Sequence record: NC_061443.1
DNA length: 64,000 bases
Strand: one strand, 5' to 3'
The position numbers and the translations under genes were made by a program. Below, in pieces: positions 32,037-37,823 of this stretch (position 1 is its first letter; the number at the start of each line of letters is the position of its first letter). A model generated the notes under the pieces. It was not told the origin of the DNA, made no database searches, and was given only the letters and a program-made list of their open reading frames with translations.

Positions 32037-33097
32037 ACAAGACTGTTGGCCTGATGATTGATGAAGACGTAATGAACTGGCTGGACATGCTCATGCCTCA
32101 CGAACTGCGCCGCGTTATCGACGCTCTGAATAACATCGTGTACGCTCGTCGTCAGGAACTTACTGTCGAACGTCTGACCGAAGATGAAGACGTAGGCGCC
32201 CTGTCTCATAAAGAGCTGGAGATCATTCTACGTCACGCTTCCCCTAAGCATGAGTACGACACGTCCGTTCTGTCTAATGAGCAACTGCTCCGCTTGGCTA
32301 TTGACGCGCAATCCATCATCCAGTACACACTGCCGTGTCACTGTTCGCCTATCATGGTCAAACGTGCTTTTGCTAACGGTCTTACGTGCTCCCTGCTGGG
32401 TAGCTTCTCGAATCGTGCTGATATCATCATGGCTGTTCATCATTGGGAGTACGGCCTATCTAACATCTCACTTGATTCTATTACCGATAGCGATGCGCGT
32501 CCTGATGAACAGGGCCTGTACCTGTGCTATGACGAACACAAACAGATTCGCTATGGTCGTCTATTCAAGAATGCAAACGAAGGCTGGACCTTCCATGAAT
32601 CGTATTCGAATGGCGGCTCGACTTCATGGCTCGAAGCTGCGGAAGGTAAAGCACTTGATGACGATGACCTGCCGATCTGCTTGCTGTCTAATTGGGTATT
32701 CGTAGCACCCGACCAGTCTCCGTCAATCATTCGCAAAGAGACAGATATCAAACGTCTGTCTGACACACAACGCATCTTCCTCTACCTGCGTAGCCTGAGT
32801 CCTCACGTTAAGGCTGAAATCGTTACTCACTTCGACGGTGTGCTCGACAATCGCGTATTCACGTCTGTTGATCAGATTGGTCGTCTGACAGAAACTGATT
32901 GGCGCAATGCTGCTATCGCAATCGGTGAAGAAGAACGTGGTCAAGAAGGTAAACACTACTGGGATGATCGCAGTGCTTGGGCCTGTTTCGTCGCTGTGCT
33001 CAACTCTCTGTGTTATGACATGGAAACACGCGACTTCCAACCTCAGTACGAGTATCAGGCTAACGACGACACTATGGAAGAAGATAACAATGGCTAA
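32033..33097 (+). CDS. hypothetical protein with HeH-like module near the N-terminus
   Basis: GGAG RBS; LSHKELEIILRH...LSNEQLLRLAIDAQ. Confidence 0.8.
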   Translation: MNKTVGLMIDEDVMNWLDMLMPHELRRVIDALNNIVYARRQELTVERLTEDEDVGALSHKELEIILRHASPKHEYDTSVLSNEQLLRLAIDAQSIIQYTLPCHCSPIMVKRAFANGLTCSLLGSFSNRADIIMAVHHWEYGLSNISLDSITDSDARPDEQGLYLCYDEHKQIRYGRLFKNANEGWTFHESYSNGGSTSWLEAAEGKALDDDDLPICLLSNWVFVAPDQSPSIIRKETDIKRLSDTQRIFLYLRSLSPHVKAEIVTHFDGVLDNRVFTSVDQIGRLTETDWRNAAIAIGEEERGQEGKHYWDDRSAWACFVAVLNSLCYDMETRDFQPQYEYQANDDTMEEDNNG

Positions 33098-33623
33098 ATC
33101 ACTTGGCGTATACATGACTTACATTCTGCGCCACAAGCCGCAGGATATCGGAATTGCAATGGACACTCAAGGCTGGGTGTCTGTTCTGGACTTTTTGCAG
33201 AAAGCGAAGTATGCGAAACAGGTCACGCTCGAAATGCTGATTGCAGAAGTTGAGGCAGACGAGAAAGGCCGCTTCGAGTTCAACTCAAACAAGTCCAAGA
33301 TTCGTTGTGTTCAAGGCCACTCGGTAGAGAACGTCATCCTGAACCTTGAGCCGTTCACAGAACTTGAACCTCTGTATCACGGCACGGCAGAAAAGAACGT
33401 TGCTTCGATCATGCACGAAGGTATCACGAAACGCCGACGCAAACATGTTCACATTAGTCGTGAGCAAGAAACTGCCGAGAACGTTGGGCGCCGTCACGGT
33501 CTGCCTGTTGTGTTCGAGATCGACACATTGGCGATGATCACTCACGGCTACAAGTTCTACCGTGCAGAGAACGGTGTGATCTTAACGGACCACGTACCTT
33601 CCAGATACATCAAGCTGGTGTGA
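33090..33623 (+). CDS. kptA: RNA 2'-phosphotransferase, Tpt1/KptA family
   Basis: YILRH, MD..GWV, KGRFE, IRCVQGHS, LYHGT, I..EG....R.HVH, G.KFY.AENGV.L. Confidence 0.92.
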   Translation: MAKSLGVYMTYILRHKPQDIGIAMDTQGWVSVLDFLQKAKYAKQVTLEMLIAEVEADEKGRFEFNSNKSKIRCVQGHSVENVILNLEPFTELEPLYHGTAEKNVASIMHEGITKRRRKHVHISREQETAENVGRRHGLPVVFEIDTLAMITHGYKFYRAENGVILTDHVPSRYIKLV

Positions 33624-34026: not shown

Positions 34027-34044
34027 GCTCGTTCGTGCTATAAT
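33990..34044 (+). promoter_or_regulatory. early promoter module 5
   Basis: AAGCACAACATTGGACGAAATAGC box, TG-C-TATAAT at 34039. Confidence 0.75.
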
Positions 34045-34093
34045 AGAGATGAACGCTAGACAGTCGTTTAGCTACTTACATGAGGATATGTAT

Positions 34094-35671
34094 ATGAAAA
34101 AGATTAAACACACTTTCCGTCTGACCGACTTGGTACACATCGCCAAACTTCCTGCAGGTATGTCCAAATTCCATGAAGGTTCGGATGCGATTGTTGTCGG
34201 CCGCAACGAAGATAGTGACCAGTATACCCTGCATGTTAAACATGTCGGTGAGCTTTCTTGGTATGAAGGTAAATCGTTGACGTTGATCAGCCATAACAAT
34301 GGCGAACTGCTTGACCAGTGGGAAGCGGGCGACTACGGCCGTGACAAGAAAAAGAAACGCAAGATCCCAAAAGAGCTGCGTAACTTCACGGCTATCCTGC
34401 CTGTTACCTGCAACGCCGATTGTTCGTTCTGCCCTGAGAAAGAAATGGAGCAGAAAGCCACTCAACAAGAGTGGCAAGACAATCTGATCTACAGCATCAA
34501 ACGTATGACGCTGAAAACCCGATTCGACCACATATCAATCTCAGGTGGCGAGCCTTCGTTGCGTTCGAAGTTCTTGTTCGAGACTATCGACCGCATTCAG
34601 AAAGAAACGCCAATCAAGAAAGTCGGCCTGACTTCTAACGGCTTCTTCCTTGAAAAGCAAAACAGCACGTTCGACTTCTTAGATCGCAACACTACGCCTG
34701 AGATGACTAGCAAGCTGTCGCATCTGAATATCAGTATGCACTCGTTTATGCGTGAACGTGCGAACAAGATCATGGGCGTGAACTACAAACAGACGCTGGA
34801 AGATTTGGTTCGTTTCCGTCGCCAGCTGGGTCGTGATGTTAGCTTTCACATCAATTTTGTGATCAACGACAAGACTGGCTCTATTACGGAAGAGTTCAAA
34901 ATGGCCGCTAACTTCATGCGAGCCAATCCGTTTATCGACGTTGTGTTCCGTGTTGACTACAACGATGTTGAACTGTCGAAAGCGTTGCGTGAATACGCTA
35001 TGGAATATGAAGCGTGGCAGGAAGCAAGCCGTATCGCAATCGCAACTCGCAAGAAATGCAAAGTGAAAGAGCCTAAAGCTCCGCACATCGTTCAGAAGTT
35101 TGACCGCTACTTCGGTGGCCAGAACCTTGCAGATGTTGAAAGCGCTTGGACTACAGGCTGCCCGTCATGTTTCACCCATGCGTCGAACCCTGTCAATAAC
35201 AGTCGCGCATATTTGAAAGCGTCCTCGTATGAACCGAACGAAGACGAAGAAGAATACACTGAGCTGGTGTATCACATGGACGGCACACTGTACTGGGATT
35301 GGACTCGTAATGACCCAGTGCCTGCGCCGCGTAGCAAGCGTTTTGACTTCGACATGAAAGACGAAGAAGATACGCAGCCTAAGAGCAAGAGCAAGAACAA
35401 AAAGACTGAACAAGATAAGGCGTGGGAACATGGTTCCGTAGCCGAGGCGATTAACGCCAATCGCTGCTCGTTCGGTCCTGCGGCACCTCATCATTGCTCT
35501 TACGATTCTACTGGTACTGCCGTGGCTCCGCAGACAGTCAAGCCGCAGCCTAAGACTGTTAAGGCGAAAACAGTCAAACCTTCTAAGAAAGTGAGCAAAG
35601 GTAAAGTTTCAACCACACCTGGCGGTTCCCCTGGCGTGTGTGGTTACGGTCATAGTCGTTGTGGTTACTAA
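34094..35671 (+). CDS. radical SAM protein with N-terminal extra domain and Cys/Gly-rich C-terminal tail
   Basis: CNADCSFC (CxxxCxxC) at 34409; ISGGEPSL; LTSNG; NISMH; GAGGA RBS favours ATG 34094. Confidence 0.85.
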   Translation: MKKIKHTFRLTDLVHIAKLPAGMSKFHEGSDAIVVGRNEDSDQYTLHVKHVGELSWYEGKSLTLISHNNGELLDQWEAGDYGRDKKKKRKIPKELRNFTAILPVTCNADCSFCPEKEMEQKATQQEWQDNLIYSIKRMTLKTRFDHISISGGEPSLRSKFLFETIDRIQKETPIKKVGLTSNGFFLEKQNSTFDFLDRNTTPEMTSKLSHLNISMHSFMRERANKIMGVNYKQTLEDLVRFRRQLGRDVSFHINFVINDKTGSITEEFKMAANFMRANPFIDVVFRVDYNDVELSKALREYAMEYEAWQEASRIAIATRKKCKVKEPKAPHIVQKFDRYFGGQNLADVESAWTTGCPSCFTHASNPVNNSRAYLKASSYEPNEDEEEYTELVYHMDGTLYWDWTRNDPVPAPRSKRFDFDMKDEEDTQPKSKSKNKKTEQDKAWEHGSVAEAINANRCSFGPAAPHHCSYDSTGTAVAPQTVKPQPKTVKAKTVKPSKKVSKGKVSTTPGGSPGVCGYGHSRCGY

Positions 35672-35678
35672 GAGGAAT

Positions 35679-36239
35679 ATGAAAATGAAAAAAGAATTGA
35701 ATCATGAAGGCTACTGGTACAGCACTTACGAAAAACATCTGCCTCAGCCTCTTGCGCGTGTTCGTCCATTCAAAGGTAAAGCGGAGTTTCTTGCTGCGCT
35801 TGAAGCTGTAGAGTCTAAGGCCCAGAAACGCCAGTACAAAGGCTTCTCTACTTGTCGTATTTGTGACTGTGCAAACGGTAGTGCTGACTATAACTACAAA
35901 GACTGGCAGTGGCCGTCGGGTTATTCTCACTACATCAAAAAGCATAACGTACAGCCTTCGAAAGAGTTCCATGAGTTTATCCTGGAGTGTGCTGAGACAC
36001 TGCTGGGACCGACGAACAAAACAGTTGAGCCTGCGGTGACCAAGCGCGAGCTGCGCCAGCTAATGGGCGTTGTTATGGAGTATACAGGCTCCGAGAAGCA
36101 TCGACTATATGCAATGCTGACCGTGAAGAAGTTGCAGCGTCAACTTAACGGTCAGAAGATTCCAGCCTCTATCGCTGCCTTAACTGTGAAAGCAACGGAA
36201 GACGAACTTAATAAAGCGCTCAAGCGTCTGGGAGACTGA
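35679..36239 (+). CDS. hypothetical protein with probable metal-binding motif
   Basis: YKGFSTCRICDCANG...WPSGYSHYIKKH. Confidence 0.75.
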   Translation: MKMKKELNHEGYWYSTYEKHLPQPLARVRPFKGKAEFLAALEAVESKAQKRQYKGFSTCRICDCANGSADYNYKDWQWPSGYSHYIKKHNVQPSKEFHEFILECAETLLGPTNKTVEPAVTKRELRQLMGVVMEYTGSEKHRLYAMLTVKKLQRQLNGQKIPASIAALTVKATEDELNKALKRLGD

Positions 36240-36981: not shown

Positions 36982-37557
36982 ATGGAAAAGAAATTCTGCA
37001 AACTGGCGCACATTGGCGCTGATGTGATCATGCCAGCTATCCTGTACGCACTGAATAGAAAGATGCAGGCAGGCATTCAAGTAGATCTGGCCGAAGCGTA
37101 CACCTTGCTTAACGATACTCAAGCCGTGTATCTCACTATCGCAAGCGGGCAGCCAGATCGTTACTACACGCAACTTGAGCCTACCATTCGAGCGCTCCTT
37201 GTGAAGTATGAGATACAGTGGGCGCTTGACCGTGATGCGTTGGCGAAATACTGTCAATCGTATATGAAGCGTAAAGGTTTCACTCACGTTGAAGACGATG
37301 TGTATTCATATCCAGAAGTTGTCGCGTATAACAATTACGACCGCGTGTTCATACGTGCTCTGATTGGTACGCCTGAATACAACCCACTGGAAGCTGCTAT
37401 CCAAGACGAGATGGACGTCGCGGCTGAGATGGACGTGATTGATAAGAAACTCGACCGCATAGAGGAAGGCTGCTGCTCTGAGTGCGGCACAAAACTCGAT
37501 CCCGATATTGATGGTCCGTTCATGTGCTTGGCATGTGACGAGGACGATGGAGAATAA
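36982..37557 (+). CDS. hypothetical protein with C-terminal Zn ribbon
   Basis: CSECG...MCLAC. Confidence 0.75.
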   Translation: MEKKFCKLAHIGADVIMPAILYALNRKMQAGIQVDLAEAYTLLNDTQAVYLTIASGQPDRYYTQLEPTIRALLVKYEIQWALDRDALAKYCQSYMKRKGFTHVEDDVYSYPEVVAYNNYDRVFIRALIGTPEYNPLEAAIQDEMDVAAEMDVIDKKLDRIEEGCCSECGTKLDPDIDGPFMCLACDEDDGE

Positions 37558-37559
37558 AA

Positions 37560-37823
37560 ATGGCTGTAGGCTTCGTAAAAGATGATGGCGTTAACGACAC
37601 CATCGAAGCTAACCTGAACAACGAGATTGACCGCGCCCGTGCAGAGCTGTTGGGTAAGGGCACTACGCATTGCGTTAACCCTGATTGCGGTGCAGAGATT
37701 CCTCTCATGCGCCGTGTAGCTATGCCGAATGCACGTTACTGTGTTACCTGTCAATCAAGCCACGATGGTTCGGCTGTTAGCCACTATAATCGTCGTGGTT
37801 CAAAAGATTCTCAACTGAGGTAA
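37560..37823 (+). CDS. TraR/DksA C4-type zinc finger protein (YbiI-like)
   Basis: HCVNPDCGAEIPLMRRVAMPNARYCVTCQS; N-terminal helix with acidic D..E. Confidence 0.85.
   Translation: MAVGFVKDDGVNDTIEANLNNEIDRARAELLGKGTTHCVNPDCGAEIPLMRRVAMPNARYCVTCQSSHDGSAVSHYNRRGSKDSQLR

Follow-up and report, generated by a model that had tools for sequence, protein, structure and literature searches.

A radical SAM protein of Erwinia jumbo phages with a conserved tail of Cys-x-aromatic motifs, possibly a peptide substrate tethered to its own enzyme

The DNA analysed here is a stretch of 64,000 nucleotides from sequence record NC_061443.1 (hereafter the window), which belongs to Erwinia phage pEa_SNUABM_2, an Alexandravirus jumbo phage with a genome of 265 kb; window base 34094 corresponds to record base 220094. 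One of its genes, pEaSNUABM2_00274, is annotated as encoding a hypothetical protein and specifies a radical S-adenosylmethionine (rSAM) protein that ends in a disordered tail with four Cys-x-aromatic motifs (Table 1). The tail is conserved among the homologues, and most tail-less relatives that could be assessed encode a peptide of the same kind in a separate small gene downstream. The pairing of an rSAM enzyme with a Cys-repeat peptide is of a known kind, but the form seen here, fused, without a SPASM domain and essentially restricted to phages, is not known to have been described before. The tail could be a tethered peptide substrate that is modified at its Cys motifs by its own rSAM enzyme, a reading to which a probability of roughly 0.45 is given here.

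The open reading frame (ORF) and every motif named in a first-pass annotation of the sequence (CNADCSFC, GGEP, CPSC, LVYHMDGTLY and the four tail motifs) were found where it had placed them. The AlphaFold model, based on a 50-homologue alignment, consists of four parts, i.e., a barrel (residues 1-80), a KKKKRK hinge, a confident core (96-410) and a tail (417-525) with a predicted local distance difference test (pLDDT) score <50, and the disorder claimed earlier for the tail thus agrees with the model. The core belongs to the radical SAM superfamily, as CNADCSFC and GGEP (residues 151-154) are invariant and a partial TIM-barrel was modelled at pLDDT >90; it scored 44.8 bits with the Pfam model Radical_SAM (PF04055, cut-off 29.5) and 38.1 with Fer4_12 (PF13353, cut-off 22). 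The CPSC hairpin is formed by the strands 352-356 and 359-363, and LVYHMDGTLY (residues 391-400) lies close to the end of the core. Behind it comes the charged stretch KRFDFDMKDEED (residues 415-426), leading into a linker rich in KxK and PKK stretches; in total, residues 406-525 include 21 Lys and Arg residues and 12 Asp and Glu residues.

Conservation of the tail in homologues had been suggested as a check, and a tail of this type was found conserved in every homologue. A word-index search gave 56 homologues with 35-100% identity, most of them from metagenome contigs, the longest of which reached 330 kb, and tail statistics were obtained from 48 homologue tails with 147 Cys in total. Phe or Tyr stood at position +2 for 125 of the 147 Cys (Tyr 67, Phe 58), and for 13 more the C-terminus came before position +2. 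The consensus was [GS]-[SR]-C-[GSNR]-[YF], present in 2 to 6 copies per tail, and the protein ended in C-x-[YF] in 32 of the 48 homologues and in G-[ML]-C in another 11 (43/48 together). All 16 proteins from cultured Erwinia, Dickeya and Yersinia jumbo phages had the Cys-x-Tyr/Phe ending, with C523 invariant. The linker drifts in sequence and varies from 46 to 120 amino acids in length among homologues, and a homologue with 60% identity to the window protein (P0025) kept the same 2+2 layout of motifs with changed x residues. The tail motif is not a product of chance: all four tail Cys of the window protein have an aromatic residue at +2, which was reached by 0 of 100,000 shuffles of the tail. 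No comparable motif cluster was found in any other ORF of the 265-kb phage genome, and a second CxY-bearing substrate encoded by the phage was therefore rejected, leaving the tail as the sole phage-encoded candidate substrate.

A profile search of 1.8 billion cluster representatives yielded about 1,700 matches, of which 288 had E below 1e-10; about 14 close representatives came first, followed by many rSAM proteins of 270-470 amino acids. Members of this wider family, which amounts to at least about 150 clusters at 50% identity, share NF[ST]I[IV]LPGxCNAxCxFC in the N-terminal part and H.DG.LY.DW at the end of the core, and a second CxxC, mostly CPxC, was present in 193 of 194 members. The top 144 cluster representatives mostly ended in 2-9 Cys repeats flanked by Gly or Ser. 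When the tail could be delimited (108 members), at least two Cys were found in 97, with exactly two being commonest, whereas 10 tails had none and 1 had a single Cys; the last Cys was located no more than 3 residues from the C-terminus in 88. The usual context was [GS][GS]-C-G and the tail generally ended in C or CG. Since the Cys repeat is common across the wide family, it is ancestral, with Cys-x-aromatic being the version of the Erwinia-type clade. Intermediate metagenome relatives (P0049, P0051 and P0056-P0064) have an Erwinia-type core, with FCPEKE after the cluster motif, yet their tails are of the S-C-G-G type. C-G-G therefore gave way to C-x-aromatic within the clade, and this change is not tied to the FCPEKE core motif.

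About a tenth of the members end shortly after the core. Ten of these tail-less members were looked up, one of which lay on a contig too short to be informative, and six of the remaining nine had a small ORF downstream of the rSAM gene on the same strand. The peptides encoded by all six ORFs (Table 1) combine an amphipathic helix and a basic patch with Gly/Ser-Cys-Gly repeats at the C-terminus, which finish in C or CG; the one from L022 is 65 amino acids long. When random six-frame ORFs were taken from the phage genome for comparison, only 1.4% satisfied a loose version of the tail rule. The split genes are not assembly artefacts, as the six loci are independent and divergent and have their own start codons, and four of the ORFs start within 4 nt of the end of the rSAM gene or overlap its stop codon. 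Because tail-less relatives encode the same kind of peptide downstream, the tail is a separable module that remains with this enzyme, either fused or as the next gene. As in pathways for peptides that are ribosomally synthesized and modified post-translationally (RiPPs), the enzyme goes together genetically with a ribosomal peptide that has both a recognition part and a core at its C-terminus; the two are fused in most members, and this pattern of fusion and fission matches that of an rSAM maturase and its precursor peptide.

The genomic contexts of the wide family were phage-like, with T4_Y16D, Acb1, YopX and SLT genes and contigs from IMG/VR. A pattern scan of 185,579 prokaryote genomes returned two contigs of metagenome-assembled genomes, one of which was a family member with a fused tail. 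Other phage rSAM enzymes, which were matched at weak E-values, were without such tails.

The specific family of the core could not be assigned with any available model. No model specific for this rSAM protein exists in Pfam, NCBIfam, PHROGs or PADLOC, and the latter two gave only generic rSAM or pVip resemblance, with no specific family for either the enzyme or the small peptides. The best and longest family match was HxsC (TIGR03977; residues 103-319, E 4e-15), but its 55.4 bits are far under the cut-off of 267.9 and neighbours corresponding to HxsA, HxsB and HxsD are missing at the locus, so HxsC identity was rejected. MoaA (TIGR02666 / NF001199) was rejected at 50.7-54.1 bits against cut-offs of 231-284, with neither CX2CX13C nor the GG end present. 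The same applied to viperin/pVip (NF038283, PDLC02903; 47 bits vs. 180), for which the PADLOC pVip profile matched in its N-terminal part only, at positions 9-148 of 257, with nucleotide triphosphate being bound by the C-terminal half in viperins, and to NrdG, PflA and QueE, with 16-27 bits against curated cut-offs of 126-232. The concern that the core might simply cluster with a known enzyme was thus not borne out for MoaA, viperin, HxsC, NrdG or QueE. Weak NCBIfam matches included CefB and PapB, and YydG ranked below HxsC, MoaA and viperin. Structural comparison of the AlphaFold core with VIA-align gave Z 16-17 to GDGT-MAS, MoaA and viperin, and Z 13.5-15.5 to the peptide maturases SuiB, ChlB, SkfB and CteB and to anSME. 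The "SPASM/twitch-like" label given to the C-terminal part of the core had to be dropped, as only two Cys are conserved there. C356 and C359 are the only conserved Cys after the core barrel, whereas SPASM requires a seven-Cys motif (CX9-15GX4C ... CX2CX5CX3C ... C) that binds two auxiliary clusters, and PF13186 was not matched; a twitch domain of the BtrN/MoaA type would require three or four to ligate its single auxiliary cluster.

It is established for the superfamily that rSAM enzymes bind SAM at a [4Fe-4S] cluster held by CX3CX2C and generate a 5'-deoxyadenosyl radical. If the tail is a tethered substrate, the core would bind SAM and form the radical in this manner, and the disordered Lys-rich linker would bring the C-terminal [GS]-[SR]-Cys-x-[Tyr/Phe] motifs to the active site. 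They could possibly be guided there by a basic patch or the KRFDF motif binding to the conserved acidic EPNEDEEEYTE surface, and would be modified one after another, at or beside the Cys. Candidate reactions include a crosslink from Cys to the aromatic residue or to the backbone, epimerisation and Cys oxidation, and an auxiliary metal site to bind the substrate thiol may be located at the CPxC hairpin. In the relatives with split genes, the same peptide, consisting of helix, basic patch and Cys repeats, would be acted on in trans. The architecture, its conservation, the pattern of fusion and fission and the absence of a named family are observations; entry of the tail into the active site, its modification, the chemistry and the benefit to the phage are inferred. 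A tethered substrate is favoured because rSAM systems that modify peptides are typically recognised by an rSAM gene together with a small peptide that has a recognition part and spaced C-terminal Cys motifs. Copy number varies and the context is low-complexity Gly/Ser, as would be expected of sites modified repeatedly rather than of one fixed site for a cofactor. The match to HxsC and the presence of YydG/EpeE, SuiB, ChlB, SkfB, CteB and anSME among the sequence and fold neighbours also speak for it. A more far-reaching proposal, which we hold only tentatively, is that a large rSAM family, almost confined to phages, acts on its own Cys-repeat peptide, tethered or from the adjacent gene, and that the enzymes of the Erwinia/Dickeya/Yersinia jumbo-phage clade make a new Cys/aromatic modification, e.g., a three-residue Cys-x-Tyr/Phe crosslink.

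Several points weigh against a tethered substrate. Modification of the tail is itself a prediction from sequence, and for three of the nine informative tail-less members no partner peptide was present on the DNA at hand. A SPASM domain is missing from the core, in which no more than two further Cys are conserved, and the nucleotide-acting MoaA and viperin are as near in fold as the peptide maturases. No RiPP recognition element (RRE), protease or exporter gene was found near the rSAM gene, and a 1:1 fusion of enzyme and substrate would be wasteful for a secreted product. The presence of at least two Cys in each Cys-bearing tail (with one exception), together with the universal CPxC, would suit a metal site of the 2+2 type, or a dithiol shuttle, just as well. 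The tail was left undocked, with pLDDT <50, in the AlphaFold model, although this is no evidence in either direction.

The first-pass annotation had left the choice between an in-cis precursor and a metal-cluster-binding extension. The split genes favour a separable peptide module, but the roles of substrate, ligand and redox arm are not decided by computation. As a cofactor module, the tail or the separate peptide would contribute two Cys which, with the CPxC hairpin, complete an auxiliary Fe-S or other metal site, and the substrate would be found elsewhere, e.g., a nucleotide or nucleic acid. This seems unlikely. It would account for the occurrence of CPxC in nearly all members with no third or fourth conserved core Cys, and for the predominance of tails with at least two and most commonly exactly two Cys; the fold also aligns over residues 87-414 to MoaA, which owns a C-terminal auxiliary cluster. 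However, hhalign aligned only residues 103-229, i.e., the N-terminal half, to E. coli MoaA, and CPSC could not be equated with the Cys of the MoaA cluster. A Cys spacing of 4-15 residues and more, 2 to 9 copies and a disordered linker of 46-120 amino acids are not what would be expected of structural ligands, and a cofactor role would not explain why the residue at +2 is almost invariably aromatic.

Instead of being a ligand, the tail could shuttle electrons or sulfur for a reaction whose substrate is a small molecule, DNA or RNA, either as a flexible dithiol/disulfide arm that carries reducing equivalents into the active site, like that of class Ia ribonucleotide reductase (RNR), as an iron-binding electron donor like Dph3/Kti11, or as a sacrificial sulfur donor. 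In E. coli NrdA the C-terminal Cys pair is C754/C759, and the Cys-bearing tails, all but one with at least two Cys and mostly with the last one at or almost at the C-terminus (88/108), resemble the RNR tail. The resemblance of the core to the nucleotide-acting MoaA and viperin points in the same direction, as do the RNA-repair genes recurring near family members (Tpt1; RtcB and RNA ligase, L019; CCA-adding enzyme, PTH2 and Macro, L017; Thg1, L063), but across the family such genes are not conserved as neighbours. Many tails have an odd number of Cys and copies number up to 9, the variable spacing and the near-invariant aromatic residue count against this role as well, dedicated redox partners are normally folded proteins rather than Gly/Ser-rich low-complexity peptides, and Phe is about as frequent as Tyr at +2, so that a redox-active Tyr is not required. 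A shuttle role is considered improbable, as is a cofactor role, but both are serious rivals of the tethered substrate.

It is still less probable that the tail has no catalytic link to the core and serves as a Lys-rich disordered arm for nucleic-acid binding or localisation, with its Cys making disulfides or binding metal. The KxK and PKK stretches of the linker would suit such an arm, but the Cys repeats always accompany one rSAM family, whether fused or in the adjacent gene, are not found in any other ORF of the phage and obey a strict Cys-x-aromatic rule at the extreme C-terminus. That the tail is a glycyl-radical carrier and the enzyme its fused activase is very improbable, since, although several motifs read RCGY or RCGF and [SR]-C-G-[YF] resembles RV[CSA]G[FY], two relatives were named "organic radical activating enzyme" by JGI and the activase of pyruvate formate-lyase is a fold neighbour (Z 13.2), the Gly that is invariant in R-V-[CSA]-G-[FWY] is not conserved in the clade (G 49, S 34, N 18 and R 18 at +1 of about 136 motifs), some whole proteins carry only CRF or CSY motifs, a buried site would be needed whereas the tail is disordered, and the NrdG and PflA models scored far under their cut-offs.

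Among known systems, HxsC is the closest named analogue of the phage enzyme, by sequence resemblance and not as a family member. In the HXS defence system, the His-Xaa-Ser repeat protein HxsA is matured by the rSAM enzymes HxsB and HxsC with HxsD, and HxsC with HxsD has been implicated in modification within the HxS tripeptide repeat of this basic, DNA-binding protein (PMC13128918, Nat Commun 2026). As in the phage protein, the repeated unit there is three residues long and lies on a basic protein, and the rSAM enzyme that is placed at the repeat lacks a full SPASM domain (PMC13128918). However, the phage repeat is Cys-x-Tyr/Phe instead of His-x-Ser and is fused to the enzyme, HxsB, HxsD and the peptidoglycan-binding domain are missing from the phage system, and HXS is a bacterial defence system.

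The sactipeptide and ranthipeptide synthases (CteB, PapB) and the SCIFF, CXXX-repeat and Cys-every-fifth systems likewise have an rSAM gene beside a small peptide with spaced C-terminal Cys, and CteB (5wgg) is a fold neighbour of the phage core with Z 14.1. They differ in having SPASM with seven Cys and usually an RRE, as compared with one CPxC pair and no RRE in the phage enzyme; moreover, the phage peptide is usually fused, and its motif and phage setting are unlike theirs. For the peptide epimerase YydG/EpeE, a sequence match to the solved structure (E 1.5e-7), an NCBIfam match (5e-8) and fold similarity (Z 13) were found, and it too is a peptide-modifying enzyme that has few additional Cys of its own, but only the first ~100 core residues align and its peptide YydF is separate and without Cys repeats. 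MoaA (GTP 3',8-cyclase) and viperin share the CNxxCxFC-type cluster motif and have Z 16.0-16.5 over about 230-255 residues, and the Y3 homologue is annotated as "GTP 3',8-cyclase"; neither enzyme has a Cys-repeat tail, however, and the CX2CX13C motif and Gly-Gly end of MoaA are absent from the phage protein. Fusion of an enzyme to its own substrate is known from borosin synthases such as OphMA, in which a methyltransferase modifies its own C-terminal core peptide and of which split versions exist in other organisms. This likeness is only architectural, as N-methylation is not a radical reaction and the fold and organisms are different.

rSAM enzymes paired with Cys-rich peptides have yielded much new chemistry, but those known come from bacteria, possess SPASM domains and have precursors that are separate from the enzyme. 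The literature lists the present protein merely as a "Radical SAM superfamily protein", in a table on phages AD1 and Y3, and nothing relevant was found in a search for phage rSAM enzymes and enzyme-substrate fusions. If the more far-reaching proposal is true, this would be the first self-contained fusion of an rSAM maturase and its substrate, and also one of the rare cases in which a lytic phage has a RiPP-like or protein-derived-cofactor pathway. If the tail is a cluster ligand or redox arm instead, it would represent a new way to build an rSAM cofactor site. Either outcome would explain a conserved gene of Erwinia phages used in fire-blight biocontrol, and because the fusion names the likely substrate, the function is directly testable.

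Table 1. Location of the features of the rSAM gene and its upstream region in the window, and of the small peptide ORFs downstream of tail-less relatives on their own contigs
Feature	Sequence	Position	Strand	Remarks
Extended -10 element TGCTATAAT	Window	34036..34044	+	TGnTATA[A/C]T columns invariant in 7 diverged phages
5' leader hairpin, 7 bp, GCTAGAC-agtc-GTTTAGC	Window	34055..34072	+	RNAalifold consensus, 7 phages
Ribosome-binding site GAGGA	Window	34082..34086	+	7 nt before ATG; conserved in alignment of 7 phages
Coding sequence, rSAM protein pEaSNUABM2_00274	Window	34094..35671	+	525 amino acids; stop codon included
N-terminal small beta-barrel, SH3/KOW-like (residues 1-80)	Window	34094..34333	+	Five strands and a helix, pLDDT about 85; followed by KKKKRK hinge
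Radical SAM core (residues 96-410)	Window	34379..35323	+	PF04055, PF13353; pLDDT >90 over most
CX3CX2C motif CNADCSFC (residues 106-113; C106, C110, C113)	Window	34409..34432	+	Ligands of SAM-binding [4Fe-4S] cluster; invariant in 50 homologues
CPSC (residues 356-359; C356, C359)	Window	35159..35170	+	Beta-hairpin turn; invariant in 50 homologues
Disordered C-terminal tail (residues 411-525)	Window	35324..35668	+	Acidic/basic stretch, then two pairs of Cys motifs with a Lys-rich spacer between them
Short linear motif KRFDFD in linker	Window	35336..35353	+	[KRE]F[DGE][FL][DE] in tails of 15/56 homologues, in cores of 0
Cys-x-aromatic motif 1, RCSFG 457-461 (C458-S-F460)	Window	35465..35473	+	
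Cys-x-aromatic motif 2, HCSYD 467-471 (C468-S-Y470)	Window	35495..35503	+	
Cys-x-aromatic motif 3, VCGYG 515-519 (C516-G-Y518)	Window	35639..35647	+	
Cys-x-aromatic motif 4, RCGY 522-525 (C523-G-Y525)	Window	35660..35668	+	Protein C-terminus
Small peptide ORF	L020	5011-5316		
Small peptide ORF	L021	4991-5230		Second gene downstream
Small peptide ORF	L022	4834-5031		
Small peptide ORF	L024	1418-1645		
Small peptide ORF	L063	2770-3018		
Small peptide ORF	L064	1565-1801		

The ATG at 34094 was taken as the translation start; the same start is annotated in MZ443786, and the homologues all open with MKKIKH. An in-frame ATG at 34049 was rejected, as it lies 4-5 nt past the -10 element, where transcription is not yet expected to have begun, and does not recur as a start in the relatives. 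The first-pass annotation had also claimed that the gene has its own early promoter. The extended -10 element is conserved in phages that are otherwise only about 70-85% identical around it, and TGNTATAATA occurs twice in the window against 0.3 occurrences expected; however, no good -35 element accompanies it and the site was missed by a consensus promoter scan. Judging from the sequence, a dedicated host-type promoter for the rSAM gene is plausible, and its "early" timing is an inference. In the leader hairpin, two of the seven pairs are kept by two-sided changes (A-U to G-C and G-U to U-A in phage Alexandra). The hairpin is located near the predicted 5' end of the mRNA and may be a stabilising 5' stem-loop. 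Among the sequencing runs, none had >6% of the sampled words and none was clearly an RNA run.

The N-terminal domain is not an RRE: no PqqD-like winged helix was found in the protein by Pfam, and the domain is an SH3/KOW-like barrel instead. Its best structural matches were KOW domains (Z 7.5, root-mean-square deviation 2.0 Å over 59 residues), which is no better than background, and a search of the ESM Atlas with the domain gave no usable match. It is missing from most of the rSAM family. In the Rivsvirus-like Erwinia phages SNUABM_5, _34 and _46 (L013/L015 2498-3637, L014 2492-3652), the rSAM protein is without the SH3-like domain and begins at RNFTAILPVTCNADC; the domain is therefore a later addition in the Alexandravirus/Y3 lineage. 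A paralogue of the domain (34-37% identity) heads a small zinc-ribbon protein in several relatives (L002 5080-5481, L004 4746-5171, L009 4746-5234, L007 4717-4989). The window gene in the equivalent place (36982-37557) has the same C-terminal zinc ribbon (CCSECG...CLAC) and an unrelated N-terminal part.

One gene upstream of the rSAM gene, the window encodes a Tpt1/KptA RNA 2'-phosphotransferase (33090-33623; PF01885, E 7.5e-44), which occupies the same place in Alexandra, Y3, AD1 and the Yersinia phages. Near distant family members, the RNA-repair genes listed above were observed, with Thg1 in L063 being accompanied by phosphatases. Such neighbours may reflect no more than the tendency of auxiliary genes to cluster in large phages. 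Directly following the rSAM gene, the next gene (window 35685-36239) has a weak match to DUF7919 (E 2e-4) and shares W.W..(G/S)Y.H(Y/M)I..HNV.PS.EF with an ORF of 111 amino acids (L003 2139-2474) inserted just upstream of the rSAM gene in several relatives, so this module seems to move around the rSAM gene. A few genes downstream, a DksA/TraR-type C4 zinc-finger protein (window 37560-37823; PF01258, E 1e-11) is conserved in all relatives examined.

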